Assembly: GCF_006345805.1 (NCBI RefSeq)
Contig: NC_042998.1
Location: 153,388,001 to 153,452,000, forward strand
Source of the DNA: Octopus sinensis
Lineage: Eukaryota
Length of the DNA: 64,000 nt
Reading direction: 5' to 3'
This document shows, piece by piece, positions 3,114 to 48,340 of the stretch; positions within the stretch are counted from its first letter, which is position 1, and each line of letters begins with the position of its first letter. Under the pieces are notes generated by a model that had not been told where the DNA came from, did no database searches, and worked only from the letters and a program-made list of their open reading frames with translations. The position numbers and the translations under genes are program-made.

Positions 3114-4012
3114 ATATAATTAGTGAATGGAAGAAATGGAGTTGAACGAAGATTGTACAGAATTCCTTTTATTACATTCTACACATGTTTCAAAGGCCAC
3201 AATTTTCCAAATTCTGATTAAATAAGGATACCATATTGCAGCTTTCTCTTCAGGAAAAAGCAGGAATTACGTTGACAGAACAAAACAAAACAGAGGCGCA
3301 GCAAAGCAATTCGAACGAGGACGCTCCTTAAGAGCCCATGGTTAAACTGTTTATCAATGTACGTTGAAATCGGGGGGGTTGGTGGGGGCCGACAAAAGGT
3401 CCGTTGGAATAATTACAGGTCAGGCCGTGGTCAAATCTAGTAGGTGAGGAATTAATGAGAACAAGGGGTGTGGAGATGTTCTGTGTGACCAAAACTAATG
3501 TTCTGAATATTTTAAGAATACAGGGTGTATTTTAGGGGCGAGACAAAACCTACCTAAAAGCATGTATGTGTATACTAGCCTATGTGTGCGCGGCCGTATG
3601 TTGGCGAGGAGCGCTAGATAATGAGCACTGCTGAGAAAACCTGTCAGGCGGCTGAAAAAATTCTGTGTTCGTGTGTTCGTCTAGGCCTGCTTGTCTAAAA
3701 ATTAACATCGTCAAAGAATCATAAGGGTATATATATTTCCAGCGTTTGCTTCCAAAAAAAACCGACCATTGATAAACAGTTTAACCATGGGCTCTTAAGG
3801 AGCGTCCTCGTTCGAATTGCTTTGCTGCGCCTCTGTTTTGTTTTGTTCTGTCAACGTAATTCCTGCTTTTTCCTGAAGAGAAAGCTGCAATATGGTATCC
3901 TTATTTAATCAGAATTTGGAAAATTGTGGCCTTTGAAACATGTGTAGAATGTAATAAAAGGAATTCTGTACAATCTTCGTTCAACTCCATTTCTTCCATT
4001 CACTAATTATAT
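3114..4012. repeat. 246-bp inverted repeat (3114-3359 / 3767-4012) with 407-bp spacer; Penelope-like pseudo-LTR pair
   Basis: The arms are reverse complements (ATATAATTAGTGAATGG...TTATCAATG) with no mismatch found by eye. Each arm holds a hammerhead motif. Flanked by (TA)n. Confidence 0.85.
3855..3965 (+). ncRNA. Type I hammerhead ribozyme motif (mirror copy on the minus strand at ~3161-3271)
   Basis: CTGAAGA at 3873-3879, a long stem II (GAAAGCTGCAAT/ATTGTGGCCTTT), GAAA at 3935-3938, minimal palindromic stem III ACATGT, and GTA cleavage triplet at 3944-3946. Stem I is imperfect. Confidence 0.55.
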
Positions 4013-4166: not shown

Positions 4167-4527
4167 ATATATCTGTGCCGGTGGCACATGACCTGCTGTG
4201 CTTGAGGAAACCTATTGAGTCAAGTACATCAACATCAAAATAAATATCAAATGGAAATTGTAGTTGTGATACCTGTGCCGGTGGCACGTAAAAAGCACCA
4301 TCCGAATGTGGCCGATGCCAGCGCTGCCTTGACTGGCTTCTATGCTGGTGGCACGTAAAAAGCACTCACCACAATCACGGAGTGGCTGGCGTTAGGAAGG
4401 GCATCCAGCTGTAGAAACACTGCCAGATCAGACTGGAGCCTGGTGCAGCCTCCTGGTTTCCCAGACCCCGGTTGAACCATCCAACTCGTGCTAGCACGGA
4501 AAACGGACGTTAAACAATGATGATGAT
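4167..4527 (+). mobile_element. 5'-truncated RTE 3'-UTR copy (SINE-like) with (GAT)n tail
   Basis: Matches the 3' UTR that follows the RTE ORFs at 13586 and 28340 (GTGCCGGTGGCACGTAAAAAGCAC...GGAAGGGCATCCAGC...GATGATGA). Confidence 0.8.
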
Positions 4528-6134
4528 ATATATATATATAAATATAAATATTTTATGTCTATCTGCCCATCTCTCTCTCTCTCTCTCTCTCTACCTTTCT
4601 AATATATATGATTTTAAAAATGTCTAGTCATATTTATTTACATTTTTTTAACCAAGGTAAATGCCAACCATTATTTGGATGATAAGAAGTTTTCTAGTGC
4701 ACATGACAACTTACAAGATAAATTAAAACTTACACTGGTGGAAGTTCTCATTTCAACTGTTCCTGAGACATTTATCCTGCACATTAATACTACACACTTT
4801 GAAATCTCCCTTCCCAATATTTTCCTGACATTTAATCATGTAGGCACCATCTATGATGAGTTAAAGATATAAATGTGAATCGATAATCAAGGTAAGTTGA
4901 TCTCTACACACATTCACAACTTTAGTTTGTAGTACATTCACATATCTCCAGAAACATTCTACTGCAAATAATCAGGGCATAGAAAACTGAAAACCTCTCT
5001 CACTTCTCTGTAATATTATCATCATTATCTTCATCATCGTCATTTTATGACTGTGTTCCATGTCACCATGGGTTGGATGGATCTTCACAGCCTCAGTCTC
5101 CCTACTCCATGGAAGCTACAACTCCCAATGACTGTTGTTCATACTAATTTCTACAGGCTGGGTGCCCTTCCTAACACCAACCACTATGGAGTGTATTTTC
5201 TTATGGCACCAACACAAGAGAGGTTGAATAGTCTTCAGTAAGACAAGAGTAGAGGGACCTCATAACCCAACACTTTCTCTACTCGTTTACCAATCACTTT
5301 ATAAAGTGAACAGTAGTGAGAGTGGGGTAGGAGCTTGTATACAACACAGTAAATGTAAATTTGGAAAGGGAATAACGATAGCAGAAAGCTGTCTTAAACT
5401 AAAACGTTCATATTATGGTGTAATTCAGTAGAAAAGTAAGTTGGCTTACTTCCCTTCGCCTATTTTATTAGGAGTTACCTCCCCTTAATTTTTATTTACT
5501 CTTTTTGTACACCCATAAAATGAACAAGTACCTTCAATATCTACTAAATACAGTTCTATATTTCAGAGATGAGGAATTATGAACATTATTTACTTGTGAC
5601 GGATATTTGTCCTCATCTTGTTTGTTGTTAACACGTTTCGGTACTTGTCTATTGTCGTGGTCCCGGTTTCTCACACGCGAATTCGCGCGCGCGCCAGACG
5701 TAGGTGCTCGTTACTCGAGATCCTACGAGGTGACTTGCGCATGCGCAGTGCAGAATTCGCGCATGCGCGTTACCCCCCCCCCAAAAAAAAGGTGTTGGAT
5801 TTCACTAAAAATATATGTGAGTGTGTGTGTGTGTGTGTGTATATATATAACATTTTCAATTTTACACAAAAAAATTACATAGTCGCTTTCCTCGCGGATT
5901 TACAGATAAATGAATTAATTACTATTTTACAGAATAAAATTAATGAATTAATTATATAAATTAAATAATTCTTGAAAATTAATTAATATTAATAATATTT
6001 TTTGAACAAAGTAAATAATTTATAAAACTTGGTTAATAATTTTTTTTACACAAACGCGAACGTATATAATTTGTGAAACTTTTTTTTTTTTTACAGACGT
6101 ATATAATTTGGTAAACTTAATGAATTAATTTCTT

Positions 6135-6545
6135 CTCATCATCATCATCGTTTAACGTCCGTTCTCCATGCCAGCATGGGTTGGACGGTTCGACCGGGGA
6201 TCTGGGAAGCCAGAAGCTGCACCAGACTCCAGTCTTATCTGGCAATGTTTCTACAGCTGGATGCCCTTCCTAACGCCAACCACTCCGAGAGTGTAGTGGG
6301 TGCTTTTTACATGCCACCCGCACAGGTGCCAGGAGAGGCTGGCAACGGCCACGGTCGGATTGGTGCCAGTCGAGGCGGCTCTGGCATCGGCCACGATTCG
6401 GATAGTGCTTTTTACGTACCACCAGTCCAGGGGTCCTGGCATTTGCCGGGTGTCACACTTGCCCCAACATGTCTTCGCAAGCAAAGGGGGTTGGCGTGGG
6501 TGCCTGTCGTGGGATGAGGTTCGATATCAACTTCGCTTGCCTCAA
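6135..6545 (-). mobile_element. RTE 3'-UTR copy inside the left fold-back arm
   Basis: Reverse complement of the RTE tail, with (ATC)n at the left end. Confidence 0.85.
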
Positions 6546-7584
6546 CAGTCTTTGTGTATAAATGTATAAATTTTTCGCACTAAATTCTTTCCGTAGAATT
6601 TATCAAAAAACGCGCAAAATTATTCCGTAGAATTTATCAAATTAAAAAACGCAAAATTAATATATTTTTTGAAATTGCAAATTATTTAGAATATAAAACA
6701 AATGAAGTTAAATTTTAAAAATAAATGTCATATACTTATACTCTGTAAGGTGCTGTGTTCACACTTCAATTTACTATTTTCTAGAAATGTTGCTTTTCTA
6801 ATTGAAACAATTTTTCTCAATCTCCATTTAAAAGTCCATAATGCCTCTTGAGACATATCAAAATGAACAACTTTGAATTACGCGGTGGTGGTGGTGGTGG
6901 TGTGAGGTTCTAATTTTTTTTTCTGATCTCTCTTTGCCCCCTCTTTATCTCAGTTGTTCATTCCGCTAATATTTAGAAAAATTTTCGCGCCCAATTTTTG
7001 TTGTCGCGGGAAAAGATGAACGATTTAAAATGTATATATATTCTGATGACAAAATATATTATCTTTCAAAAACATCCCAAATTTATAGACTATATCGTGT
7101 AGGTTTAAGAAATATATATATATATATATATATATGAGAATGAAACATCTTTCAGCTGTCTCCCCACCACACCTCCATCTAGGGGGGCAAAGAGAGATCA
7201 GAAAAAAAATTAGAACCTCACACCACCACCACCACCACCACCGCCGCCGCGTAATTCAAAGTTGTTCATTTTGATATGGCTCAAGAGACATGGTGGACTT
7301 TTAAATGGAGATTGAGAAAAATTGTTTCAATTAGAAAAGCAACATTTCTAGAAAATAGTAAATTGAAGTGTGAACACAGCACCTTACAGAGTATAAGTAT
7401 ATGACATTTATTTTTAAAATTTAACTTCATTTGTTTTATATTCTAAATAATTTGCAATTTCAAAAAATATATTAATTTTGCGTTTTTTAATTTGATAAAT
7501 TCTACGGAATAATTTTGCGCGTTTTTTGATAAATTCTACGGAAAGAATTTAGTGCGAAAAATTTATACATTTATACACAAAGAC

Positions 7585-7995
7585 CTGTTGAGGCAAGCGA
7601 AGTTGATATCGAACCTCATCCCACGACAGGCACCCATGCCAACCCCCTTTGCTTGCGAAGACATGTTGGGGCAAGTGTGACACCCGGCAAATGCCAGGAC
7701 CCCTGGACTGGTGGTACGTAAAAAGCACTATCCGAATCGTGGCCGATGCCAGAGCCGCCTCGACTGGCACCAATCCGACCGTGGCCGTTGCCAGCCTCGC
7801 CTGGCACCTGTGCGGGTGGCATGTAAAAAGCACCCACTACACTCTCGGAGTGGTTGGCGTTAGGAAGGGCATCCAGCTGTAGAAACATTGCCAGATAAGA
7901 CTGGAGTCTGGTGCAGCCTTCTGGCTTCCCAGATCCCCGGTCGAACCGTCCAACACATGCTGGCATGGAGAACGGACGTTAAACGATGATGATGA
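7585..7995 (+). mobile_element. RTE 3'-UTR copy inside the right fold-back arm (mirror of 6135-6545)
   Basis: Same sequence at the same position within the arm. Confidence 0.85.
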
Positions 7996-8521
7996 GAAGA
8001 AATTAATTCATTAAGTTTACCAAATTATATACGTCTGAAAAAAAAAAAAGTTTCACAAATTATATACGTTTGCGTTTGTGTAAAAAAAATTATTAACCAA
8101 GTTTTATAAATTATTTACTTTGTTCAAAAAATATTATTAATATTAATTAATTTTCAAGAATTATTTAATTTATATAATTAATTCATTAATTTTATTCTGT
8201 AAAATAGTAATTAATTCATTTATCTGTAAATCCGCGAGGAAAGCGACTATGTAATTTTTTTGTGTAAAATTGAAAATGTTATATATACACACAGACACAC
8301 ACACACACATATTTTTAGTGAAATCCAACACCTTTTTTTTTTTGGGGGGGGGGGGGGGGGTAACGCGCATGCGCGAATTCTGCACTGCGCATGCGCAAGT
8401 CACCTCGTAGGATCTCGAGTATCGAGTACCTACGTCTGGCGCGCGCGCGCGAATTCGCGTGTGAGAAACCGGGACCACGACAATAGACAAGTACCCACGT
8501 TTCGGCTGATATACTCTCCAG

Positions 8522-10290: not shown

Positions 10291-10479
10291 CGCCCCCTCC
10301 ACCCCCTCACCCCCTCCACCGTTACAGGAAGTCCTAAATTTTCTCATCCTTGTTGTCTCCCATGTACACTTCAAAGTCTTACGCCACCCACACCTCCTTC
10401 CATAAAAGGTAGTAGTCATTCATTGCAAGATATGTTAGTGTAGCGTACGCGGTTTGAACTTGAGTTTTATTGTTTGTCT

Positions 10480-13400
10480 ATGAATCCTGCCAAACGCGAG
10501 TTTTCTTTTCAGGTTCATGATGCTACTCGGGCCAATACCTCCCACTCCCTCAGGGTTGGCACCCTCAACGTTGGCACACTGAAAGGCAGATCTGGCGAGA
10601 TCGTTGAATTGCTTGAACGTAGGTGTGTCGATATATGCTGTATTCAAGAAGTGAGGTGGAGAGGAGGTTCTGCTAGGTTCCTCACAGGTAAAGGACAGAG
10701 GTACAAGATTTTCTGGGCTGGGAATACTGAAGGGGTCGGGGGTGTGGGTATACTTATCGCCGAAAAATGGGTAGATAAGGTAATCAAGGTAGTCAGAGTA
10801 TGTGACAGAATACTGAAGATTAGATTAGTGCTCCATCATAGTTTAGCAACTATTATATCAGCCTATGCCCCTCAGCCAGGGCTACCCGATGGACAGAAAG
10901 ACCGTTTCTATGACACCCTACTGCAGACCACCTCATTGACGAACGACAGGGATCTTCTCTTTGTGGCTGGTGACTTCAATGAGCATATTGGACGATATGC
11001 TGGGGGCTTCCATGGCGTACATGGAGGCTACAGTTATGGTTTCCGCAACGAGGAGGGAACCAGGCTGCTGGAGTTCTGTGATGCAAATAGTCTTATGGTT
11101 TGCAACACTAACTTCAGGAAACCGACAAGCCACCTGGTCACCTACCGATCGAGCTGGCATACTAGCCAAATCGACTACATCCTTGCCAGAAAAATGGAAA
11201 GATGGCTGCTTATAAATGTCAAAACCTTACCAGGCGAAGAATGTACCCCACAAGTAGTTAGTGGGGTAGACTGGTAGTTAGTGACTTTAGGATCAGGACT
11301 AAGGGGATGACTAGAAGACGACCAACATGGAGAAGAAGGGTCTGGAAGCTTAAAGACCCTGCAAATGGACAGAGATTTAGAGACATGTTACTTGAAGCCT
11401 TCAACAAAATAGAAGGGAGTATAGCTACACATAGGGTAGAAGATAACTGGACGCTTCTAAGGGACAACCTGCTGAAAGCCACTGACCAGATCTGTGGCTG
11501 GTGCAAAGTCCCCTCAAGACCCAAAATAACGTGGTGGTGGAACAATATTGTTGACAGGGCTATTAGACAAAAGAAACAGGCTTGGAAGGACTGGAAGAAC
11601 GGTGGTAGCAGGGAAGTTTATCAGACTGCCAGAAGGGAAGCTAGGATGCAGGTGTATTTAGCCAGAGGGGAAGCAGATAAGAAAAAATTAGCCAATGTTC
11701 TGCGCCGTGAGGATGAAAGACTTGAGGTATTTCGTATTGCAAGACAGTGTGTGAGAGAGAATCGTGACGTGGTAGGAGAGAAATGTGTTCGCAAGGGTGA
11801 CAGCTCACTTGCGCTAAATGAGGATGCAAAGAGAGAGGTTTGGAGACACCACTATGAATGGTTGCTGAATGAGGAAAATGAATGGGATAAAGAGAGTCTG
11901 CCGAATGTTGACCCAACAGAGGGACCAGCAATCCGAGTTGACAGTTCCTTAGTAGTTAAGGCAATTACAAGCATGAAAACAGGGAAAGCCCCTGGTCCAT
12001 CAGGAATCACTGCAGAGATGCTCAAAATATCTGATAGTGTCGGCTATAGCCTAGTCACCCGTAGAGTTAACCAGGTGATACACGAAGGAGTCATACCCAA
12101 TGACTGGAGTAGCAGCATAATAGTCAACTGCTACAAAGGTAAAGGTGACACTCTAGATACAAATAACTACAGGGGTATCAAGCTGCTGGATCAGGTAATG
12201 AAGGTCACGGAGAGGGTTATAGCCCAACTAATTAGAGAGAGAGTTAGCTTAGATGAGATGCAGTTTGGTTTCGTGCCAGGGGAAAGTACTACTGATGCTA
12301 TATTCCTGGTAAGACAGCTGCAGGAGAAATACCTAGCCAAAGACAAGCCCCAGTACCTGGCTTTTGTTGATGTGGAGAAAGCCTTCGACAGGGTCCCCCG
12401 ATCCCTTATCTGGTGGTCAATGAGGAAACTAGGGATAGATGAATGGTTAGTGAGAGCTGTGCGAACCATGTACAGAGACGCTGCTAGTAAGGTGAGGGTT
12501 GGCAACGAGTACAGTGAAGAATTCAGGGTAGAGGTTGGGGTCCACCAAGGCTCAGTCCTCAGTCCCCTCCTATTTATCATAGTCCTCCAGGCAATAACGG
12601 AGGAATTCAAGACAGGATGCCCCTGGGAGCTCCTCTATGCTGATGACCTTGCTCTAATTGCTGAGTCTCTATCAGAACTAGAGGAGAAGTTTCAGGTATG
12701 GAAGCAAGGTTCAGAATCGAAGGGCCTTAGAATCAACCTAGCCAAAACCAAAGTCCTAATAAGTAGGAAGGTAGACCAATCACAAACGCCTTCAGGTAGA
12801 TGGCCCTGCTCGATCTGTAGAAAAGGCGTAGGTAGAAACTCTATAAGATGCACCAAATGTAAGCTATGGACACATAAGAGATGTAGTAATGTCAAAGGAA
12901 GACTAACTAGGAAAATAGTTTTTATCTGTAGCAGATGCTCAGGAGCAATAAACTCTGAAAATATGCAGAGACCAACTTCTACCACGTTCCAGGGAGAAAA
13001 ACTAGAATTAGTTGATAGCTTCCGCTACCTAGGTGACCAAGTCAGTAGCAGGTGTGCTGAAAGTGTAACTGCTAGAGTAAGAATAGCCTGGGCAAAGTTT
13101 AGGGAGCTCTTACCCCTGCTGGCGACAAAAGGTCTCTCGCTCAAAGTAAAAGGCAGACTGTATGATGCATGTGTACGTACAGCCATGCTACATGGTAGTG
13201 AAACTTGGGCTGTGACTGCTGAGGATTTGCGTAAGCTCGCAAGAAATGAAGCTAGTATGCTCCGATGGATGTGTAACGTCAGTGTTCATAATCGACAGAG
13301 TGTAAGTACCTTGAGAGAAAAGTTGAACCTAAGAAGCATCAGTTGTTGTGTGCAAGAGAGACGTTTGCGCTGGTATGGTCATGTGATGAGAATGGCTGAA

Positions 13401-14047
13401 GATAGTTGTGTGCGAAAGTGCCACACCCTGGCAGTTGAGGGGACCTGTGGAAGAGGTAGACCCAGGAAAACCTGGGTCGAGGTGGTGAAGCACGACCTTC
13501 GAACTTTAGGTCTCACCAAGGAAATGACCAGAGACCGAGACCTTTGGAAGTATGCTGTGCATGAGAAAACCCGGCAAGACCAGTGAGAACAGTCAAAATC
13601 AAAATCAAGCCAAATCAATTCATATATCAGAAAGTAGAACCAAATTGAGGTTGATCAACATCAGTGGGAATTGCAGCTGTGGTTAAGCGAATCATCCGAT
13701 CGTGGTCGTTGCCGGCGCCGCCCCGTCTAGCCTCCGTGTCGGTGGCATGTAAAAGCACCATCCGTTCGTGTCCGTTGCCAGCCTCGCCTGGCCCCCGTGC
13801 CAGTGACACGTAAAAGCACCATCCGTTCGTGGCCGTTTGCCAGCTCTGTCTGGCACCTGTGCGGGTGGCACGTAAAAAGCACTCACTACACTCACGGAGT
13901 GGTTGGCGTTAGGAAGGGCATCCAGCCGTAGAAACACTGCCAGATCTGACTGGGCCTGATGAAGCCTTCCAGTTTCACAGACCCCAGTTGAACCATCCAA
14001 CCCATGCTAGCATGGAAAACGGACGCTAAATGATGATGATGATGATG
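10480..14047 (+). mobile_element. Near full-length RTE-clade LINE (APE endonuclease, RT, Cys-rich finger), one frameshift
   Basis: APE motifs TLNVGTL, CIQEVRW, GDFN and QIDYIL in 10474-11277. The 759-aa RT ORF 11307-13586 has FVDVEKAFD, GVHQGSVLSP, LYADD and CSICRK...CTKC...HKRC...CSRC. 3' UTR and (GAT)n tail extend to ~14047. Confidence 0.95.
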
Positions 14048-18109: not shown

Positions 18110-18785
18110 GACCAGTGGCCATAAAAAGTACCCATTACACTCTTGGAGTGGTTGGCATTAGGAGGGGCATTCAGTCGTAGAAACCATGCCAAATCAGACT
18201 GGAACCTGGTGCAGAACCTCTAGCTTACCAGTTCTAGTCAAACCATCTAACTCATGCCAGCATGGAAAGCAGACATCAAATGATGATGATGATGGTGATG
18301 ATGATGAGACCCTGACAGAACAGATCTAGTTATTAAGAGGTGACTCCATACTCTCCAAAGCTCCAGAACTCCTGAACTGGAGTCTCACCACAGAATGCAG
18401 CTTAATGTCATACCCAAGACACCATCAGCCCCTCTATAACAAAATGCTTGTGCTTATCCCTCTATCATAATTTAGCCTTTCAACACCTGGTGTACAGCCA
18501 TTAATCTTTGCCTTCTCCTCCCAAGTACTTGTTTATTGTGGGACCTTTTTTTCTCTTATGTCTTGCAAGGAACACAACACTTTATTAGTACTGGTGGCAT
18601 GAAACAACACCCAGTACATCCTGTAAAGTGGTTGACGTTAGGAAGGGTATGCAACTGTAGAAACCATACCAAAGATAACACTAGAGCTTGATGCAGTCCT
18701 ACAGCACACCAGTTCCCTGTCAAACTGTCCTGCCCATGCTAGCATGGAAAGTAGATGTTGGTAGTGATGACAATGATGATGTGAT
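18110..18785 (+). mobile_element. Two diverged RTE 3'-tail copies (~18110-18305 and ~18585-18785)
   Basis: GTGGTTGGC(A/G)TTAGGA...GTAGAAACC...CATGC(C/T)AGCATGGAAA core ending in GAT repeats. Confidence 0.7.
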
Positions 18786-19340: not shown

Positions 19341-20557
19341 GCATTTCCCCATACCTGACTTGATTTTAAAATAGGAAATTTGTATAATAAAAATGAGAGG
19401 TGGCCTCAGGTGCATTGGTATCAAAAAGATTCAATAGCTTTCAGAGACTATAATGTAACAAAAATAAATAAAAATAACTGCAATAAAATAATTATAGCAG
19501 ATCATTATGATTATTGTTTAGAATCATTTTTATTATGGATTGAATGGTAGTTACCATTTGTATAATAATATTATTACTTGTGACCATCTTTTGTCATATA
19601 AATGGCTCAGCATCCTCAATATTTCTTCTTCAGGCTTCTACTGGCAGCATACTACATATTTTCATCTCATTATCTATTTGTACATCATATGTACATATCA
19701 ACATAGTGGCTTTAAACACATTAACTACATTCATTTACCAAGTGTGGACTCCATGTTTCATGTAGATGAACATTGGACATCCAATGTCTCCATTTTTAGC
19801 ACCTTTCTTTCTCATCTTTTTGCAGATATCACCCATTTTGGTCCTATATACTACTACCATGCAGCATCACATTAATTATACATTCTTCATACCATCCACT
19901 TTTTCTTGAGACATCCCCTTTTTGACAAGTAACTACCTCCTAAACATCCACTTCTTTCTTACTTGAGTTATTGATATTTCCACTCCATCAATCTCTGCTA
20001 ATTGGTATTAATTATGGAGTCAATACAACAATTTCTCTACTACCTTCTACTTTCTCCCTCTAAACATTATCTCTTGAAGTTTGAAAATAAATAAAGTTGT
20101 TCTTAAAAAAATTTCAGAACAAAAAGTGATTTGAGTTTAATTCTTTAGTATTTATACAGGCCCAAATATTCTACCTGCTTTATGTTCAAGCTTGTCAAAT
20201 ATGGCCTCTCACATTAATCCTACAATATCATTCTAAAAATTAATAGTTACTTCATCAAAATCTCAAAGCAACAAGATAATACAAAAATTAATTCAAAACA
20301 TGTGAATAAATATTACTTTTGACAATAATGTGAACACTAAAGGGTTAATTAAAATGTGCATTTTCCTTGTAAGCAGGAGAATGTATTTGTGTGCATTGTA
20401 TGTGTTTTCATGTATGTAATTATGTAATGTATTTGAGTGCATGTGTGTATGTATGTAAGCTCCTGAAAGTAATTTTGTTAAAAGATTTCCTGCACTGTAG
20501 TGTATAATATTGAAAGCATGGAAATTTTACACTCTTTTATCTTTGTCTAATATAGGA

Positions 20558-21238
20558 ATGGAACTGCTCTTTATCAGAGAAGCCATGTATATGGTTCTTA
20601 CTATCATCTTAGGGCTGGTCATTGCACGCGTGTACCGAAGGCGGCGATATAAACACTACGAAGTGCGAGTGCGTGATGTAAGCAAAGGTCATCGTTGGAT
20701 GATGGTCAGCATCTTCCTCAAACCAACGTACTGTGTCATAAGCCAGAACAGAATTAGTGATGGTGCACAATGTCATTCCTGCAGTATTTGTGTTGATGCT
20801 GCCAACATGAAGGTAGCCAATCAAAAAATTCCTTGCAAGCCCCTCTCAGTGAAAAGCATGTTCACACATCATCAATGGGGGCATGGCAACTTGCCCTTGT
20901 ATAGTATCTGTTATATTTGCAACGAGCCTTGCAATAACCAGCTGCAACTTTGTGATTACATCTGCTCTTGGTGCCAACGCTGTGTCCATACTGAATGTTT
21001 CACACACTGTAAAAAAGAATGTGATCTTGGTCCTTACAAAACAGTGATTGTACCTCCACATTGTGTCACCCTTAAGTGGGTTGGTTTGAAAGGCAGGCAG
21101 CACCTTATTGTGGACTCAGTGAAGAGACCAAATATAGTGAACTGGAGCCCACTTATTGTCATTGCCAACCGAAAGAGTGGTAACAATGATGGGGAAAGCA
21201 TCTTACAAGCATTTCGTTCCTATCTGAATCCTGCACAG
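20558..21238 (+). CDS. DGKE: Diacylglycerol kinase epsilon, first coding exon (TM helix, C1A, C1B, start of catalytic domain)
   Basis: MELLF...VLTIILGLVIARVYRRRR (TM helix), two C1 domains, CDLGPYKTVIVPP, and WSPLIVIANRKSGNNDG...LNPAQ. Acceptor-like TATAG at 20551-20555; donor CAG|GTAAGA at 21239. 681 nt, phase 0. Confidence 0.95.
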
Positions 21239-21754
21239 GTAAGACAATTTCTCATTTTTTCTCTTTCATTTATTTTCTTCAGTTCATGCATTTCACTCAT
21301 TGCCTATTCTAGAGTACTACCTTCAAGATTATTTTAGTTGATCTATGTCTATCAACCTGCATTGTGTAGTTAGTGTACAGTTGTGTATATGGGTGAGTAT
21401 GATTAGTGCACAGTTGTGTACAGTTAATGTATAACTAGCATGCTATCAGTGTATGGTTACCATACAGTTAGTATATGGTTAAAGTACTTTCCTGCATGAG
21501 ATTTCTCTTTCATCTGATTTCTGTCATGAAGTCGGAACAGAGTACCAGTTGTTGAAAGATTCATGGTCAGGTACTAGAAAACATTTTAAAACCAATTCTT
21601 TTTCTCATTGTCTCAATATTTCAAAGTGTTCATAATTATTTGTAATTATTTGATAACAGCAGTTAATCCAAAGCTGCAGCTGTGGAAGTTAGCATGATAT
21701 TAACTCCAGTTGATTCCATGTATTGATAGTAAAGATATTTAACATTCCAATGTC

Positions 21755-24658
21755 GGTTAATATAGGGCGTGACAAATATCGGAAAATCAAAAAAAAAATG
21801 TGTGTAATAGGTGTAAAACAACTTCCTATGAACGAATATGAAAAAAAAAATTCGCGCACGCGAAAGGGGGGTGGGGGAGAGTCCTCGGAAAATTCACATC
21901 GGGAAGTTCCGAAAGCGTCTGAGGGGCTGACCCGGGCACCAAAACAAAAAAAAAATTGTGTAATATGTGTAAAACAACTTGCTCTAAACGAATATGAAAA
22001 AAAAAATTCGCTCTCGAGAAAGAGGGGTGGGGGAGAGGCCTCGGAAAATTTATGTCGGGAATTTCCGAAAGCGTCTGAACCGGGCACAAAAACAAAAACA
22101 AAAACAGCGTAATAGGTGTAAAAAAAATTGCTCTAAACGACTATCATGAAAAAAATGCGCGCTCGCGAAAGGGGGGTGGGGGAGAGGCTTCGGAAATTCA
22201 CACATGAATCATAAACTCCGTATTTTTGTACATATTTCGCAAAAAAAAAAATAATAAAGAGAAGAAATTCTGGAAAAAGTGAAGAAATGTTGGATCTCTG
22301 CCATGTGAATCAAAATACGTGTCAGAAACATCTTGAAATACTACAGAAATTATGTTACGAAAATGATAATGTATACATACCTCTTTGAGTGGTCCATCGA
22401 CAGTGTTGATAAAGAAATGAGATGGGTTGCGTTTGGAGGAAAAAATTATCGCGGGCCAGGATAAAGACTTGCTGCTGCCAATAAGAATATGTGTATTCTC
22501 TTGGCAGCAGGTCTGATGCTGTCCAAAAAAAGGAACTTCGCCATGTATTGTTTTAGGTAACAGGCACGAATGCCTGGGCGAACAACCGATTTCTTCACTG
22601 ACCCCCACAATCTCTCTATTGTCTGCGTGTGCACCGACGTGTTTGTCGGATCCACAAAGTTTTCGCTGTGGTTGACGCGGAAGTGAGTATACCCGATATT
22701 TCCAAGAGAGTTATAAGCACCCCAAGAATCACTATATACTACCGACCCTTGGCGTATATATCGGGTAATTAAGGGGATCAGTGTGGCGGCATCTCGCCTT
22801 TCCTCTTCACCACACTCAGATGAAAGAGGTATCAAAAATTTCTTTTTGGCTACCCGCTCGATTCCACCGAAGAGCCAGATAGTTTTTGTCAGTCTTCCTC
22901 GATTGTATTTCCTCCTTACAATAACAGATTCGTCGATCTCCACTTCAACTCCTGGTCCACCGATTTGGTCCTGGTAATTCTCTACCCAATGTTGACAAAC
23001 CTCGGAGCAGAAGGATCGCCAATCGATTGAGGTCGAATACGAAATTTTCAAATTTTCAACGGCTAATGAGTGCGACCAACCGTCTATGAGGAAGTAATTT
23101 ACAAATAACAAGATTTGACCTGGTGATAGCTGGCTCTTCCCCAAAAATGTATTGCTGTATAGGGATATTGAATATCGACATTGTGTTGGCCGTTGCCTTC
23201 GACGGCGAACAGTCCTTCCACATCGGAAGATGTTTGTATTTCCTTGCAATGTACATGGTAAATTGCATCTAGGGCAGTCAACTGTGCGGGGAATGATATT
23301 ATGTTTTCGAAAAAAATCCAATGCCTCAATGTCATTAGTAAATCGGCGAATCCCATCCTGTAATGTTAATTCACATGAATTGCAAAGGGCCACTCTCTAT
23401 CATAAAACTTAACGCTTGTGTATCTACGACTGAAATGAATATATGAACTTGTTCTGTACCAAGGAGCGGGAAATCCTCCACACCAGAAGAATGGATGAGT
23501 AAACACTGGTCAATGAAAGGTCAGTCTTTTGTCTAAGAACAGTTGTTTACAAGACGATAGTTGGTACCAAGTTCTATTCAAGAAAGGTCAGTCTTTTGTC
23601 TAAGAACAGTTGTTTACAAGACGATAGTTGGTAACAAGTTCTATTCAAGACAAAAGACTGACCTTTCATTGACCAGTGTTTACTCATCCATTCTTCTGGT
23701 GTGGAGGATTTCCCGCTCCTTGGTACAGAACAAGTTCATATATTCATTTCAGTCGTAGATACACAAGCGTTAAGTTTTATCCTGGCCCGCGATAATTTTT
23801 TCCTCCAAACGCAACCCATCTCATTTCTTTATCAACACTGTCGATGGACCACTCAAAGAGGTATGTATACATTATCATTTTCGTAACATAATTTCTGTAG
23901 TATTTCAAGATGTTTCTGACACGTATTTTGATTCACATGGCAGAGATCCAACATTTCTTCACTTTTTCCAGAATTTCTTCTCTTTATTTTTTTTTTTTTG
24001 CGAAATATGTACAAAAATACGGAGTTTATGATTCATGTATGAATTTCCGAAGCCTCTCCCCCACCCCTCTTTCTCGAGAGCGCATTTTTTTTTTCATATT
24101 CGTTTAGAGCAAGTTGTTTTACACATATTACACTATTTCAGAATTTCTTCTCTTTATTATTTTTTTTTTTTTGCGAAATATGTACAAAAATACGGAGTTT
24201 ATGATTCATGTGTGAATTTCCGAAGCCTCTCCCCCACCCCCCTTTCGCGAGCGCGCATTTTTTTCATGATAGTCGTTTAGAGCAATTTTTTTTACACCTA
24301 TTACGCTGTTTTTGTTTTTGTTTTTGTGCCCGGTTCAGACGCTTTCGGAAATTCCCGACATAAATTTTCCGAGGCCTCTCCCCCACCCCTCTTTCTCGAG
24401 AGCGAATTTTTTTTTTCATATTCGTTTAGAGCAAGTTGTTTTACACATATTACACAATTTTTTTTTTGTTTTGGTGCCCGGGTCAGCCCCTCAGACGCTT
24501 TCGGAACTTCCCGATGTGAATTTTCCGAGGCCTCTCCCCCACCCCCCTTTCGCGTGCGCGAATTTTTTTTTTCATATTCGTTCATAGGAAGTTGTTTTAC
24601 ACCTATTACACACATTTTTTTTTTGATTTTCCGATATTTGTCACGCCCTATATTAACC
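21755..24658. mobile_element. Merlin-superfamily DNA transposon arranged as an inverted dimer, in DGKE intron 1
   Basis: Termini GGTTAATATAGGGCGTGAC...GTCACGCCCTATATTAACC. 8-bp TSD CCAATGTC at 21747-21754 and 24659-24666. Outer inverted arms 21755-22465 / 23776-24658; inner inverted repeat 23402-23534 / 23648-23780. Confidence 0.92.
22446..23393 (-). CDS. Merlin (IS1016/IS1595-like, ISXO2-type) DDE transposase, 315 codons, open but beginning at GTG
   Basis: N-terminal Cys cluster (CPRC...FRC...C), IGGPGVEVEIDES, KYNRGR, WLFGGIER, DAATLIPLI, VYSDSWGAY, VNHSENFVDP and HTQTIERLW. Codon 1 is GTG, with an in-frame TAG two codons upstream. Confidence 0.9.
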   Translation of the reverse strand: MALCNSCELTLQDGIRRFTNDIEALDFFRKHNIIPRTVDCPRCNLPCTLQGNTNIFRCGRTVRRRRQRPTQCRYSISLYSNTFLGKSQLSPGQILLFVNYFLIDGWSHSLAVENLKISYSTSIDWRSFCSEVCQHWVENYQDQIGGPGVEVEIDESVIVRRKYNRGRLTKTIWLFGGIERVAKKKFLIPLSSECGEEERRDAATLIPLITRYIRQGSVVYSDSWGAYNSLGNIGYTHFRVNHSENFVDPTNTSVHTQTIERLWGSVKKSVVRPGIRACYLKQYMAKFLFLDSIRPAAKRIHIFLLAAASLYPGPR

Positions 24659-26452
24659 CCAATGTCTCGGTAATTTATCTCACTATAAATATAGCCAGTT
24701 TATTGGAGAGCTAGACACATTTCGTCCTTCTAAGTAGAAGTACTGCATAATTAATGAGGGTTTCAAACCCTAACAGAAATCTATCTTAGACAGATTTTGA
24801 TTACTTGAATCAAATGATCTATGTGTGTGTGTGAGACTTTCATGACTTTCTTGAACTGTGGGAGTGTGTGTATGGTGTAGTGTGTTGGCAAGGTCTCTTG
24901 ATAATGTCAAGCTGACACATGTTGCTCTTATTGATATCAACTAACCAGCTCTGATTTTTTCAGGTTTTTTCTTCATTTATGTCTTTTTATTCATTTTTTT
25001 ACCAATTCAGTTGCATTGACTATTGTGGCTGTTTCTATAGGTCACTGACTATTATTATTCAACTTCACTCAGATTTGGTCTTCTTTGTGGTAGAATTTAC
25101 ATGGGTAGCAGGTTACTACCTGTAACCTTAGATATCCACAAGCTTTCAGTAATCTTTCAAATGCATAAAATCCTCCTGATAATCTTTCCTGTTCCTAAGA
25201 GGCAAACTTTCTGTAGAAGCTCTTCAGGACAGTCCATTCCTGTCTCCTTCCTAATTACAGGCAAGACCTTAATAGTTTTCATGTTCTAAATTCTCACAGT
25301 TTCAAATTTTAAGGGATTGTATATTTTTAATTTTTCATCTTCTTTCTTTACAATCCTAAAATCAGACATGATGGATCAGTCAGCAAGCAAATTCACTTTT
25401 CCCTATATATTATTTTTATATCTGGTTTATCATTTTCTAGCTCCTTATCTGTTTGAATAGAAAATCCCATAAAATTTTGCATATTCTCCTTGAGCCAGCT
25501 TGAGACATTCTACATTCTTTCATTCCAAATTCCACATACTCTACATTTTGCTGACACCTTCTCCCCATTACACATATTTTTTCAAGTTGTTTATCTTTAA
25601 CACGTAATCTTGAGGCTCTCTGTTTCTTTTTTCAGTTGCCCTTTTTTCAACCAAGTCCAGAACTTTGTTCTATATACTTCTTCAGTCACTTTCCAAAACT
25701 AACCATGCAAAGATTTTTCTTTAATGTGTTTAAAATACTTTCTTTAAATTTCATTCTTGCTCTTTTCTCCTATTCCACACTTGATCACCTGCTTCTTATT
25801 CACTATCTTCAGTAATTTCTCTCAGCTGTTCTATAAATATTCCTTTCAATCTGTCACACTCTTCCACAGCAATTAAACCTGTTCCACTCTGGTCTCTCAA
25901 GTACAACTGGTTGATATCAGTTTTTGGATGATGGGCTTCTTTCATAGTCAGCAGCTTTCTAGTTTTTCTGTCAAGTTTCTGTATGTTGTTTTTCGTCCAA
26001 TCTACAATTCATGCTCCATTTTTTGCTTCAGTAACATTTTTTGAATTCAGCTTTTACTGTAATATTTTCCTTACTCCCCTTACTTGTAATTTGCTTCATC
26101 TCTTCATGTTTTATTTCATCTGCCTCCAATATTCCCAAATACTTACACTACTGTCCTTCTTCTACTGCTTTCATTGTTTGCCCATTTGGTATCCTTCAAA
26201 TCTTTCTCATTTCATTATCAATATAGCACATTTTTCAATCCTGAATTCCAAACCTATATCATTTGAAAAACTGTGAGCAGTTTGTACTAGACTTTTCAGC
26301 TGCACCTCAGTTTATGCATAAAGCTTTATATCATCCATAAAAAGGAGATGATTTATCTGACCATACTCTTTTCCCAAATCATGAGCTATTTTAACTTCTC
26401 ATAACATCAAACTTAGTGATATCATGGCCAATACAAATAATAATGGACATAA

Positions 26453-29103
26453 GCCGTGAGGACCAAAGACTGGGGGTGTTTCGCGTTGCAAGACAGTGTG
26501 TGAGAGAGAATCGTGATGTGGTAGGAGAGAAATGTGTTCGCATGGAAGATGGTTCACTTGCGCTAAATGAGGATGCAAAGAGAGAGGTTTGGAGACGCCA
26601 CTATGAAAGGTTGCTGAATAAAGAAAATGAATGGGATAAAGAGAGTCTGCCGAATGTCGAACCAACAGAGGGACCTGCTATCTGAGTTGACAGTTCCTTG
26701 GTAGTTAAGGCAATTACAAGCATGAAGACAGGGAAAGCCCCAGGCCCATCAGGAATCATTGCAGAGATGCTCAAAATATCTGGTAGTATCGGCTATAGCC
26801 TAGTCACCCGTATAGTTAATCAGGTGATACATGAAGGAGTCATACCCAATGACTGGTGTAGCAGCATAATAGTCAACTGCTACAAAGGTAAAGGTGATGC
26901 CCTAGATACAAATAATTACAGAGGTATCAAGCTGTTGGATCAGGTAATGAAGGTTACGGAGGGGGTCATAGCCCAACTAATTAGAGAGAGAGAGTTAGCT
27001 TAGATGAGATGTAGTTTGGTTTCGTGCCAGGGAAAAGTACCACTGATGCTATATTCCTGGTAAGGCAGCTGCAGGAGAAATACCTAGCCAAAGACAAGCC
27101 CCAGTACCTGGCTTTTGTTGATGTGGAGAAAGCCTTCGACAGGGTCCCCCGATCCCTTATCTGGTGGTCAATGAGGAAACTAGGGATAGATGAATGGTTA
27201 GTGAGAGCTGTGCGAGCCATGTACAGGGACGCTGCTAGTAAGGTGAGGGTTGGCAACGAGTACAGTGAAGAATTTCGGGTAGTGGTAGGGGTCCACCAAG
27301 GCTCAGTCCTCAGCCCCCTCCTATTTATCATAGTCCTCCAGGCAATAACGGAGGAATTCAAGACAGGATGCCCCTGGGAGCTCATCTATACTGATGACCT
27401 TGCTCTAATTGCTGAGTCACTATCAGAACTGGAGAAGTTTCAGGTGTGGAAGCAAGGATTAGAATTGAAGCGCCTTAGAGTCAATCTAGCTAAAACCAAA
27501 GTCCTAATAAGTAGGAAGGTAGACAAATCACAAACGCCTTCAGGTAGATAGCCCTGCTCGATCTGTAGAAAAGGTGTAGGTAGAAACTCTATAAGATGCA
27601 CCAAGTGTAAGCTATGGACACATAAGAGGTGCAGCAATGTCAAAGGAAGGCTAACTAGGAAGATAGTTTTTGTATGTGGCAGATGCTCAGGAGCAATAAA
27701 CACTGAAAATGCTCTAAGACTAACTTCTACCACATTCCAGGGAGAAAAACTAGAAATAGTTGATAGCTTCCGTTACCTAGGTGACCAAGTCAGCTGCGGG
27801 GGCGAGTGTGCTGAAAGTATAACTGCTAGAGTAGGAATAGCTTGGGCAAAGTTCAGAGAGCTCTTACCTCTGCTGGTTACAAAAGGCCTCTCGCTCAGAG
27901 TAAAAGGCAGACTGCATGACGCGTGTGTAAGAACAGCCATGCTACATGGCAGTGAAACATGGGCCGTGACTACTGAGGATATGCGTAAGCTCGCAAGAAA
28001 TGAAGCCAGTATGCTCCGATGGATGTGTAATGTCAGTATTCATACTCAACAGAGTGTAAGTACCTTGAGAGAAAAGCTGGACCTAAGAAGCATCAGATGT
28101 GGTGTGCAAGAGAGACGTTTGCGCTTGTATGGTCATGTGGCGAGAATGGATGAAGATAGTTGTGTGAAAAAGTGCAACACCCTAGCGGTTGAGGGAACCT
28201 GTGGAAGAGGCAGACCCAGGAAAACCTGGGACGAGGTGGTGAAGCACGACCTTCAAACTTTAGGTCTCACTGAGGAAATGACTAGAGACCGAGACCTTTG
28301 GAAGTATGCTGTGCGTGAGAAGACCCAGCAGGACAAGTGAGACCATAACCCGTGGCCTTCTACATGGGATGTAGCCAGCCCACTTAAGCATACCTTCCCT
28401 TCTTGGGACACAAAACTCTACTTGTGAAGACCTGTTGAGGCAAGTGAGAATCAGAATCGAAATCGATCAATGGAAATTGCAGCTGAGTTACCAGTGCCGG
28501 TGGCACGTAAGAGAACCATCCGAATGTGGCCATTGCCAGTGCCGTCCCGACTGGCCTCGTGCCGGTGGCACGTAAAAAGCACCATCCGTTCGTGGCCGTT
28601 GCCAGCGCCGCCCCGACTGGCCTCGTGCCGGTGGCACGTAAAAAGCTTCATCCATTCGTGGCCGTTGCCAGCCTCGCCTGGCCCCCGTGCCGGTGGCACG
28701 TAAAAAGCACCATCCGTTTGTGGCCATTTGCCAGACTCGTCTGGCACCACCATCCGTTCGTGGCCGTTGCCAGCGCCGCCCCGACTGGCCTCGTGCCAGT
28801 GGCACATAAAAAGCACCATCCGTTCATGGCCGTTGCCAGCCTCGCCTGGCCCCCGTGCCAGTGGCACATAAAAAGCACCATCCGATCATGGCCGTTTGCC
28901 AGACTTGTCTGGCACCTGTGCCGGTGGCACGTAAAAAGCACCCACTACACTCATGGAGTGGTTGGCGTTAGGAAGGGCATCCAACCATAGAAACATTGCC
29001 AGATCAAACTGGGCCTGGTGCAGCCTTCTGGCTTCCCAGACCCCAGTTGAACCGTCCAACCCGTGCTAGCATGGAAAGCGGACGCTAAACAATGATGATG
29101 ATA
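26453..29103 (+). mobile_element. 5'-truncated RTE LINE with stops and frameshifts and an expanded 3'-UTR repeat array
   Basis: Collinear with 11703-14047. ORF pieces at 26698, 27024 and 27939. (GAT)n tail at ~29092-29102. Confidence 0.95.
28490..28950 (+). repeat. ~60-65-bp tandem hairpin units in the RTE 3' UTR
   Basis: Seven GTGCC(G/A)GTGGCAC(G/A)TAA motifs separated by GCCAG...CTGGC linkers. Confidence 0.85.
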
Positions 29104-29774
29104 AGCTATAACCACATCTGATACTTACTCTCCCAAGTCTTTGTTTTCCTCCTATCAATTTAGTATTCTAATGTTTCATACTTTCATTGACCTTTCCTGC
29201 CACTCCAAACATTCTCATTGTTTTACTTATTCAATTGTGCACCTACAATTTCTAATTATCATTTTATCAACTAATAATTAGTCTTTAGTTAACCTACTTT
29301 GCTCTATCCTTTCTGTCCCACTGGAAGTAAACTGTTACTTTCTAGGTGATTATATAACTTTTCCCCCCAAGACACCTGTTATAAACTTCCACACAAGTGG
29401 CAAAGAAGTTATAGGTCAAACAGCTGACAGCTATTTATCTTTTAAGGGCATCCTCAGGACATAACAACATTCATCCACTTGTCATCTAGGTCCCTGTTGT
29501 AACATGTCCCTGTTGTAAGCATTCATCAAGATGTGCAGCAATCCTTTCATGCAACAGTTGCAAGTTGTCTCTCTACCTGTGTTAGTCACTCAGCACTTTC
29601 TTTGTGTCTCACTGGCCTGTTCCAATGTTCTCAAAATACTTTACTTTCTTCTGCATCAGGAATCACTTCCTGATGTTGATCCCCCTTTGTTTCCTCAAAA
29701 AGACATCTTCTATTTGATTGAAACAGTCTATTCTTTTCAAAACCTTTACACTTAGCATCACATCTTTTCATGTA

Positions 29775-47854: not shown

Positions 47855-48340
47855 AGTCATCATCCTCATCATTGTTTAATGTCTGTTTCCATGCTGGCAT
47901 GGGTTGGACAGTTTGACTGAGGTCTGGAAAGCCAGTGGCTGCACTAGGCTCCAATCTGATCTGGCAATATTTCTACAGCTGGATGCCCTTCCTAACGCCA
48001 ACTACTCTGAGCGTAGTGACATCGATCATGTTTGGATGGTGCCTTTTATGTGCGACCGGCACAGGATCTGGCATCAACCATGTTCGGATGATACTTTTTA
48101 CATTCCACTGGCACGGAAGCCAGTCAGAGGGCACTAGCATTGGCCACATTCGGATGGTGCTTTTTATGTGCCACCAGAATGGGAGCCAGTCAGGGGGCAC
48201 TGGCCACAGCTACAATTTTGGTTTTACTCAACTCAACAGGCATTCTGAAGCATATCATATCACCCAATGCATCAAGAGTACTTTTAAATGGGCCGGATAT
48301 GCAACACTGACATCGGCCATGGCTGCGATTTTACTTTAGT
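47855..48340 (-). mobile_element. Diverged RTE 3'-UTR copy
   Basis: Reverse-complement tail motifs CATGCTGGCATGGGTTGG, GGATGCCCTTCCTAACGCC and GTGCTTTTTATGTGCCACC. Confidence 0.75.

Follow-up and report, generated by a model that had tools for sequence, protein, structure and literature searches.

The 64-kb window of Octopus sinensis DNA, by which we mean the whole stretch analysed here, contains a 2.9-kb GG...CC element at 21755-24658. From left to right it is composed of arm A, a transposase gene on the minus strand, segment B, two 67-bp tandem units, segment B' and arm A'. Its features are as follows.

21747-21754: left target-site duplication (TSD) CCAATGTC, identical to 24659-24666
21755-22465, minus strand: arm A, the native 3' end, 711 bp, delimited by inverted-repeat pairing with A' and by alignment
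21783-22202: subterminal repeat array of arm A, 2.8 repeats of about 156 bp
22446-23393, minus strand: Merlin/IS1595-type DDE transposase ORF, 315 aa, 948 bp, uninterrupted
23402-23534, minus strand: segment B, 133 bp directly 5' of the ORF (5' UTR or promoter region)
23515-23648: two tandem 67-bp units (23515-23581 and 23582-23648), one base different
23648-23650: central inversion joint, 3-bp microhomology AGA
23648-23780, plus strand: segment B', inverted copy of B, 133 of 133 bases complementary to B
23776-23780: B'/A' deletion joint, 5-bp microhomology TTTAT; B' and A' overlap by these 5 bp
23776-24658, plus strand: arm A', inverted copy of A, 883 bp, starting with YPGPR-stop and holding one extra repeat block of about 172 bp
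23988-24159: extra block in A', about 172 bp, placement ambiguous by about 20 bp
24659-24666: right TSD CCAATGTC, identical to 21747-21754

Most of this layout had already been described from the letters of the window. Our coordinates agreed with that sequence-only reading almost base for base for the element ends, the TSD, A, A', B, B' and the B'/A' joint. The 67-bp units that it reported do exist, but their coordinates had been placed one base off, and the central AGA microhomology was absent from it.

Termini and transposase of the element

The two copies of CCAATGTC match at all eight of their fixed positions, with a chance expectation of about 1.5e-5. Outside the element both flanks are unique, and the 8-bp duplication that they carry is direct, not inverted. 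The terminus GGTTAATATAGGGCGTGAC is located at 21755 and its reverse complement ends at 24658, so that both ends start with GGTTAATATAGGG..., i.e. with 5'-GG termini. A scan of the 64 kb for GGTTAATATAGGGCGTGAC with up to three mismatches matched only the two end sites (0.02 expected by chance) and uncovered no TIR-like sequence inside the element. The native 5' terminus is absent, as had been proposed, and each outer end is a copy of the 3' end, distal to the transposase. With only two terminal sequences and a centre made of 5'-UTR sequence, the element is neither a nested insertion nor a composite or dimer of two complete elements. An exon resembling diacylglycerol kinase epsilon (DGK-epsilon) lies about 420 bp upstream of the element; its best database protein match is 62% identical.

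The transposase ORF showed a significant match to the Pfam domain DDE_Tnp_IS1595 (PF12762; E = 3.9e-15, 56.6 bits against a cut-off of 27). It has 913 homologues, the best with 66% identity, and the nearest database proteins are 57-66% identical. The best homologue is found on contigs of about 1-2 kb. The protein is colinear from end to end with seven homologues and keeps D154, D222 and the glutamate of HTQTIERLW. However, the position of the initiator methionine of all homologues is occupied by GTG, in-frame stops are located just upstream, and the first in-frame ATG appears only at about residue 284. Because the start codon is replaced while the DDE residues are kept, the enzyme for this element would probably have to be supplied in trans. 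A reading of the "ORF copy" as autonomous is thus in doubt, even though the frame is uninterrupted. The GTG start is absent from the sequence-only reading.

The earlier assignment to the Merlin superfamily (IS1016/IS1595-related) holds. Apart from its DDE_Tnp_IS1595 transposase, which is about 315 aa long and includes a Cys-rich N-terminal region, the element has GGTTAA... ends of the 5'-GG type, like the GGTAA/GGTTAA termini of its relatives, and an 8-bp TSD where 8 or 9 bp are expected. It departs from the superfamily in having two 3' ends, a GTG start and unusually long arms. The 24-462 bp given for Merlin TIRs in PMC8101967, which cites Feschotte 2004, is a descriptive range, not a defining one; arms of 711 and 883 bp, plus the 133 bp of B or B', exceed it, in agreement with the sequence-only reading. 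The element is also longer (2.9 kb) than its relatives (about 1.6-2.7 kb).

Arms, centre and joints

Arm A comprises the last 17 coding nucleotides and the stop codon, the 3' UTR, the subterminal repeats and the terminus. The first 100 bp or so of the 3' UTR are conserved in a related family on L001, and the subterminal repeat motif reappears about 220 bp past the stop codon in L004 and L005. This conservation with L001 and L004 supports the identity of the region as 3' UTR. There are 2.7-2.8 repeats of 156 bp in each arm, of which about 40% is unique 3' UTR. The repeats are predicted as possible secondary transposase-binding sites.

A' is arm A in inverted orientation, which makes the element the head-to-head palindrome that had been claimed. 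The alignment of the two arms falls into four blocks. Outside the extra block it comprises 839 bases, a single one of which is mismatched, and the remaining differences are changes in repeat-unit and homopolymer length only, namely a 2-bp poly-T indel and the additional repeat block of about 172 bp in A'. In this block the unique region and an R2-like repeat are combined into a chimera, with an identity of 90% to the adjacent copy and of 97% to R2. The difference more probably reflects a loss from the left arm than a gain by the right arm. Over the whole halves, about 970 bases are shared, among which we found one substitution and nothing diagnostic of separate parents.

The inner end of A' opens with TAT CCT GGC CCG CGA TAA, which encodes YPGPR and the stop, the final codons of the ORF. 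Here it is fused to B' at TTTAT, and the equivalent of 22466-23401 (936 bp, including the whole ORF) is lacking. One half therefore carries the ORF and the other has lost it by a deletion at a 5-bp microhomology, as previously described. The presence of these five codons and the stop in A' shows that the template of the right half carried an ORF. The second joint lies in the centre. Each 67-bp unit is made of x (20 bp) and u (47 bp), and the centre reads x-u-x-u followed by x'. The AGA at 23648-23650 fits both the continuation from u to x and the start of x', and the adjacent bases 23647 and 23651 fit one parent each. The 40-mers spanning the two joints contain ...GCGTTAAGTTTTATCCTGGCCCGCG... 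and ...GTTCTATTCAAGACAAAAGACTGACC.... The tandem array is probably a native 5'-UTR array. B and B' are predicted to fold into a perfect 133-bp hairpin (dG -175 kcal/mol, z = -31), and the centre forms an asymmetric spacer of 113 bp.

Palindromic chimeras are a familiar artefact of long reads, so a fold-back chimeric read or a mis-join in the assembly could in principle have produced such a structure. A fold-back at the read level should yield a perfect palindrome with inverted flanks. In this element, however, the arms are not mirror images, as one lacks 936 bp and the other 172 bp, the centre is asymmetric, and the flanks are unique and directly duplicated. We therefore regard an assembly artefact as very improbable. 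The direct duplication also rules out fold-back replication in place over the whole element.

Relatives and origin of the palindrome

To date, searches for other copies gave no match. An exact look-up of the transposase found no record among 153 billion gene positions. A bait of 804 aa, for which nine spurious ORFs of arm A, segment B, the centre and the joints were concatenated, had no match among 5.8 billion proteins. When JGI metagenome contigs were scanned for exact occurrences of either the 20-nt terminus or the conserved subterminal motif, each pattern gave 0 matches. Within the window, BLAST of the element against the remaining sequence revealed no further copy, and BLAST of the reconstructed empty site (...AACATTCCAATGTCTCGGTAATT...) revealed no paralogous empty site.

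The relatives that could be measured have an ordinary architecture. L006, L008 and L009 are 1.9-2.7 kb in length with TIRs of 26-137 bp, 8-bp TSDs and GGTAA/GGTTAA termini, and the TIRs of L013 and L014 measure about 75 and 215 bp, giving a range of 26-215 bp for the five. For L007, L010 and L011, the TIR/TSD search gave no clean boundaries; L010 (Elysia) is a cluster of Merlin fragments in direct orientation. In L004, the closest family with flanking sequence (64% aa identity), no inverted copy of its own 3' region was found in the 726 bp upstream of the ATG.

These data bear on whether arms of 0.7-0.9 kb are the canonical structure of the family, the present copy being unrearranged like Galileo or fold-back elements. 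Long, internally repetitive TIRs do exist elsewhere, as in Galileo (0.3-1.25 kb; PMC3573991) and Tm1 (PMC3169594), the subterminal repeat motif is common to a family 64% identical in protein, and a second GG element with an 8-bp TSD and long arms is present in the same window (see below). However, A' ends on its inner side in a coding tail that a microhomology joins to 5' UTR, which is the mark of a deletion and not an evolved TIR boundary, and B' repeats in inverted orientation the sequence upstream of the ORF itself. The short TIRs of the five relatives, the lack of a palindrome upstream of L004, the TIR range in PMC8101967 and the mean length of 1,635 bp of curated mollusc Merlins (PMC10294476) also speak against it. 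A native long-TIR design is thus unlikely.

The sequence-only reading had proposed that two copies fused and then transposed as one unit. In this scenario, an autonomous copy and an ORF-deleted derivative were joined head-to-head at their 5' sides, through end joining, ectopic recombination or alternative transposition on two 3' ends, and the composite subsequently moved and generated the CCAATGTC TSD. The perfect 8-bp TSD and the intact, identical termini are compatible with such a movement. DNA transposons usually give rise to non-autonomous copies through internal deletions with microhomology at the joint (PMC3814204), and the different repeat numbers of the arms could reflect a different parental copy. 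Yet the scenario needs more events, as a deletion derivative must have existed beforehand and both a fusion and two independent 5' truncations must have occurred, and the halves differ by a single substitution without any diagnostic difference. No second copy of either kind was found in our searches. In addition, a rearrangement during repair at the donor site keeps the parental TSD, and a perfect TSD is therefore equally explained by rearrangement in place and does not discriminate between the two. The near identity of the halves and the microhomology at both joints mean that one parental copy suffices, with gap repair by template switching. We consider that a fusion of two copies is not required and that transposition as a unit is one of two possible sources of the TSD, and judge this scenario to be rather improbable, if less so than a native long-TIR design.

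We favour an origin from one Merlin copy, in which an inverted copy of the element's own sequence, lacking the ORF and consisting of the 5'-UTR segment B joined to the 3' end A, would have taken the place of the 5' end through abortive synthesis-dependent gap repair, with a probability of roughly 0.6. Near-identical halves (B/B' and A/A' alike) are what copying from a single template predicts, and microhomology of 5 and 3 bp at the two new joints is a signature of template switching or MMEJ, as in abortive gap repair. From these joint signatures we infer the repair mechanism; the place and time of the event and any later movement of the composite are likewise conjectural. The process would begin with excision of the element from one chromatid. 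A strand primed at the 5'-side flank would copy the short terminal repeat, jump to the homologous repeat that terminates the template on its 3' side and then copy this 3' end inward. It would skip the ORF at the TTTAT microhomology and copy B next, and the growing strand would finally be end-joined at AGA to the strand coming from the opposite side. The product would retain the original 8-bp TSD. With two identical 3' termini and three subterminal repeats at each, it should remain a substrate of the Merlin transposase.

Some observations count against a repair origin. The 172-bp block of A' is only 90-97% identical to its presumed sources and needs an extra event, either the loss of a unit from A or the use of a second template. 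A second long-armed GG element with an 8-bp TSD is found in the same window, and a parental monomer with a distinct 5' end was not found in the collections searched.

Comparison with known systems and implications for fold-back elements

The closest parallel is Goblin, a MITE of Aedes aegypti that descends from the Tc1/mariner element Ozma and in which both subterminal regions come from the 3' region of the parent. It is proposed to have arisen during SDSA, when synthesis switched from one TIR, just copied, to the opposite TIR and the ends were then joined (Yang et al. 2013; PMC3814204). As in Goblin, the element described here has inverted subterminal regions of unequal length derived from one parental end (the 3' end), and microhomology at the novel joints. 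Goblin, however, belongs to a different superfamily and is miniature, ORF-less and present in high copy number with 54-bp TIRs, whereas our element is 2.9 kb in length, still has the full-length ORF of its transposase in one of the halves and is known from a single locus. In the "2RT" copies of Galileo in Drosophila, internal sequence has been recruited into the TIRs (Marzo et al. 2013; PMC3573991). Galileo shares with the present element TIRs on the kilobase scale, tandem repeats varying in number between the arms and adjacent internal sequence recruited in inverted orientation. It belongs to the P superfamily (THAP/P), generates a 7-bp TSD, and its copies with the longest TIRs never bear an ORF. 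By contrast, the ORF is kept here, and the whole 5' end is replaced, not just a part of it.

Classical fold-backs (Drosophila FB, plant FARE/Tnr8 and nematode Tm1) also have long inverted arms partly composed of tandem subrepeats, hairpin potential and TSDs. Their arms are composite and consist of repeats only, and their transposases are mostly unrelated or unknown, whereas in this element the 3' UTR and end of a Merlin gene can be recognised in the arms. As in bacterial composite transposons, the outer ends of two inverted modules could serve jointly as ends, but neither half is a complete element bounded by both its ends, and no cargo separates the modules. The IS dimers (IS21)2 and (IS30)2 are head-to-tail junction intermediates, not head-to-head palindromes. 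Maize Mu killer and derivatives of the double-Ds type are transposon derivatives with an inverted duplication of a part of themselves; they resemble the present element in this respect and in the possibility of hairpin RNA if it is transcribed through. In double Ds, one copy is inserted within another and all four ends persist. A nested insertion of this type was ruled out here, as neither an internal terminus nor an internal TSD was found.

It has long been asked how fold-backs and MITEs of the long-TIR or hairpin type develop from ordinary transposons with short TIRs. The answers have mostly been inferred from end products without an ORF, such as Goblin, the 2RT copies of Galileo and PALTA-type hairpins. 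The locus described here represents an intermediate with a full-length transposase ORF in one arm and with both joints intact. Therefore, the steps (the end switch, the skipping of the ORF at a microhomology and the end joining) are directly readable. It also extends the long-arm architecture to the Merlin superfamily. A full-text literature search found no paper tying Merlin to fold-back elements.

The case is so far a single-locus anecdote. The architecture recurs in the Octopus sinensis genome, as a second fold-back with GG ends and an 8-bp TSD is located at 5640-8495 of the window (2.86 kb, with 1.3-kb arms and without an ORF). Long arms may thus be a common, possibly heritable design in this genome rather than a one-off accident of repair. 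We tentatively suggest, as a possibility that we rate below the repair origin itself and well short of even odds, that the composite is transposition-competent on its two 3' ends and a source of Merlin-derived fold-backs common in the genome. The composite may then be ORF-bearing or only just inactivated, and the fold-back at 5640-8495 may be another product. If this is true, the element would provide the first link between the Merlin superfamily and fold-back or hairpin elements, as a captured intermediate on the way from an autonomous element to a fold-back. Two fold-backs of this kind in 64 kb suggest that the process is frequent in the genome. A frequent process would matter for genome instability, long palindromes being prone to breakage, and for the formation of hairpin RNA inside introns.

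Structure of the Merlin element and its two joints

The Merlin transposon at 21755-24658 starts with GGTTAATATAGGGCGTGAC and ends with GTCACGCCCTATATTAACC. The region was read directly and then subjected to repeat analysis, ORF analysis and arm-to-arm alignment. All parts of the structure proposed in the sequence-only reading (inverted arms, B/B', 67-bp units, target site duplication and deletion at TTTAT) were present on re-analysis, as follows.

Components of the Merlin element
21747-21754 and 24659-24666: target site duplication (TSD) CCAATGTC, directly outside both ends
21755-22465: arm A, 711 bp
22446-23393, minus strand: transposase ORF, 315 aa (Pfam DDE_Tnp_IS1595, E = 3.9e-15)
23402-23534: B, the sequence 5' of the ORF
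23515-23581 and 23582-23648: two 67-bp tandem units between B and B', one mismatch
23648-23650: central joint, 3-bp microhomology AGA
23648-23780: B', inverted copy of B (133/133 complementary)
23776-23780: B'/A' joint, 5-bp microhomology TTTAT
23776-24658: arm A', inverted copy of A, 883 bp

The structure is real and well above chance. The terminal 19-mer occurs only twice in the 64 kb with up to three mismatches allowed (chance expectation 0.02), and single strands of B/B' were computed to fold as a perfect hairpin (dG -175 kcal/mol, z = -31). An artefact of assembly is very improbable, given the asymmetry of the arms and the direct duplication in the flanks. In the alignment, A and A' differ by one substitution (T in A at ~21880, G in A' and in other repeat units), a 2-bp difference in poly-T length and an extra block of ~172 bp in A'. 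This block shows only 90% identity to the neighbouring unit and 97% to R2, one of the ~156-bp subterminal repeats in the arms, and therefore does not represent a fresh duplication; loss of one unit from A by slippage would explain the difference more easily.

Two joints of the element are novel. At the B'/A' joint the ORF was cleanly removed: the stretch missing from the right half, relative to the left, is exactly 22466-23401, the whole ORF. The first bases of A' are TAT CCT GGC CCG CGA TAA, coding YPGPR and a stop. That A' retains coding sequence at its inner edge contradicts the reading of the long arms as an evolved native design, a reading that we regard as improbable. At the central joint, the array of the left half, x-u-x-u (x, 20 bp, and u, 47 bp, form one unit), meets x', the inverted x. 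The AGA fits both the continuation from u to x (GAAAGG...) and the start of x' (AGACAAAAG...), while the flanking bases 23647 and 23651 are each compatible with one parent only. After the second u, x starts again for 2-3 bases only, which suggests that the 67-bp units are tandemly repeated in the native 5' UTR and did not arise in the event. A terminus scan found no trace of terminal sequence inside the element, so neither a nested insertion nor two complete elements can account for it. In this Merlin, an inverted copy of the element without the ORF stands in place of the 5' end, which gives the element two 3' ends.

The transposase and its Merlin relatives

The element is a genuine Merlin, as had been proposed, by its IS1595-type transposase, GG termini and 8-bp TSD. 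Published descriptions put Merlin TIRs at 24-462 bp and TSDs at 8-9 bp, with GG at the termini (PMC8101967). The arms, at 711 and 883 bp, lie far beyond this TIR range, in agreement with the sequence-only reading, and the element carries the same end twice. Curated Merlins from molluscs average 1,635 bp, and the superfamily is almost confined to cephalopods among the molluscs analysed (PMC10294476). A repeat annotation of Octopus vulgaris (2026) lists 18 Merlin families, two of them recently active with 11 insertions and 28,998 bp in total, ~2.6 kb each (PMC13282606).

The transposase has 913 homologues at E <= 1e-5, with a top identity of 66%. Its alignment with seven of these runs end to end, covering the N-terminal Cys-rich region, the VEIDE and YSDSW aspartates, the HTQTIERLW glutamate and the C-terminal LYPGP motif. 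The label "autonomous copy" is nevertheless not secure, because codon 1 (23391-23393, minus strand) is GTG where all aligned homologues have the initiator Met (ATG), two in-frame stops lie just 5' of it, and no in-frame ATG follows until near residue 284. The ORF is full length, but its ordinary translation is improbable; the gene, intact in other respects, probably has no normal start. The transposase was not on record in an exact look-up of 153 billion gene positions, and spurious ORFs from the arms had no match in 5.8 billion proteins. Exact-pattern scans of JGI metagenome contigs found neither the terminus nor the repeat motif. By BLAST, the window contained neither another copy of the element nor a paralogous empty site matching the reconstructed one.

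In the closest relatives retrieved, five Logan contigs (64-66% amino acid identity), nucleotide similarity to the window extends beyond the stop codon by ~100 bp, into A. The subterminal-repeat motif (GTGAATTTTCCGAG...CCCCC) recurs ~220 bp 3' of the stop in a Merlin family 64% identical in protein (P0002; contigs L004, 1894-1920, and L005, 1270-1296), where the contigs end. Its conservation at this protein identity hints at a functional site, possibly bound by the transposase. In L004, the 3' region has no inverted counterpart in the 726 bp upstream of the ATG, whereas in our element the inverted 3' UTR starts 388 bp upstream of the ORF. The classical Merlin layout is found in more distant relatives on long contigs; each of the five begins with GGTAA or GGTTAA.

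More distant Merlin relatives
L006: 1,874 bp, TIR 27 bp, TSD GTTTATAG
L008: 1,963 bp, TIR 26 bp, TSD GTTGAATG
L009: 2,667 bp, TIR ~137 bp, TSD CACTATTC
L013: length not cleanly delimited, TIR ~75 bp, clean TSD absent
L014: length not cleanly delimited, TIR ~215 bp, clean TSD absent

In Elysia chlorotica (RQTK01001207.1, 4294-13838), at least five Merlin transposase fragments and copies lie in direct orientation within ~10 kb, a tandem-like array without long inverted repeats.

Origin of the two 3' ends

We favour an origin from a single parent by template switching, at a probability of roughly 60%. Excision would be followed by gap repair from the sister copy, in which the strand primed on the 5' side would copy the short TIR and then jump to its homologue at the 3' end. 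The 3' region would then be copied inward, and the released ends would join at microhomologies. A single template fits because the halves are near-identical, with no diagnostic difference in ~970 shared bases; apart from the 172-bp block in A', they do not differ substantially. The sequence-only reading had proposed a palindromic dimer, fused from two copies at their 5' sides, that transposed as one unit. Its structure and two 3' ends stand, but such a fusion followed by a joint move, although it could yield the same product, is less economical than the simpler one-parent route and seems unlikely. The suggested analogy with a composite or double-ended IS fails, since neither half has two ends. 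Nor does the perfect CCAATGTC duplication, taken as a sign of movement, prove it: repair at the donor site keeps the parent's TSD, and the duplication is equally compatible with a composite that moved as a unit. Mobilisation of the composite at some time is conceivable, at somewhat less than even odds.

The template-switch model was published for the MITE Goblin, derived from the Tc1/mariner element Ozma in Aedes (PMC3814204). As in our element, both subterminal regions of Goblin come from the 3' end and are unequal in length (PMC3814204). Likewise, the TIRs of the Galileo "2RT" copies in Drosophila have taken up internal sequence and vary in their number of tandem repeats (PMC3573991). Goblin/Ozma and the extended-TIR copies of Galileo are the closest precedents. 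New here are the superfamily, the full-length ORF that one arm has kept and the fact that both joints can still be read; a full-text literature search found no paper linking Merlin with fold-back elements.

Neighbouring features and a second fold-back

Other features of the window
3114-3359 and 3767-4012: perfect 246-bp inverted repeat (100% complementary), 407-bp centre, AT-rich flanks
5640-8495: second GG...CC element, 2,856 bp, perfect 8-bp TSD CACGTTTC at 5632-5639 and 8496-8503
6135-6422 and 7711-7999: dispersed SINE-like repeat, (ATC)n-GTTTAACGTCCGTTTTCCATGCTAGCATGGGTTGGACGG..., at mirror positions in the arms of the second element
4295-4527, 13816-14045, 18122-18294, 28799-29105, 47860-48014 and 59733-59907: six other SINE-like copies
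10474-13586, plus strand: LINE-type retrotransposon, endonuclease ORF (Exo_endo_phos), then 759-aa reverse-transcriptase ORF
13730-13882 and 28494-28942: tandem arrays, units of 61-66 bp (GTGCCGGTGGCACGTAAAAAGCACCATCCGTTCGTGGCCGTTGCCAG...)
20510-21337, plus strand: 275-aa ORF with a C1 (phorbol-ester/DAG-binding) domain

The best matches of the 275-aa ORF are diacylglycerol kinase epsilon-like proteins (identity <=62%), and it is probably a large first exon. The Merlin element, ~420 bp downstream, presumably occupies the next intron, in antisense orientation to the gene. The inverted repeat at 3114-4012 is another hairpin or MITE-like element without GG termini; its TSD is ambiguous, the flank TAATTA being palindromic. 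The reverse-transcriptase ORF has a weak match to a PHD finger (22.1 bits, below the Pfam cut-off of 24 bits). The tandem arrays correspond to the SINE-like repeat's 3' tail, which can expand.

The termini of the second GG...CC element (GGTACTTGTCTATTGTCG...) are unrelated to those of the Merlin element. It is a fold-back with arms of ~1.3 kb, ~99% identical, around a unique centre of ~240 bp with (TA)n, and no transposase remnant was found in it. The two SINE-like copies in its arms have private substitutions and the insertion point in common; the SINE was therefore in place before the arms were duplicated or homogenised. This element is independent evidence that inverted copying of whole halves of Merlin-type elements takes place in this genome. 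The presence of two such fold-backs in 64 kb suggests that the process, or its products, are common.
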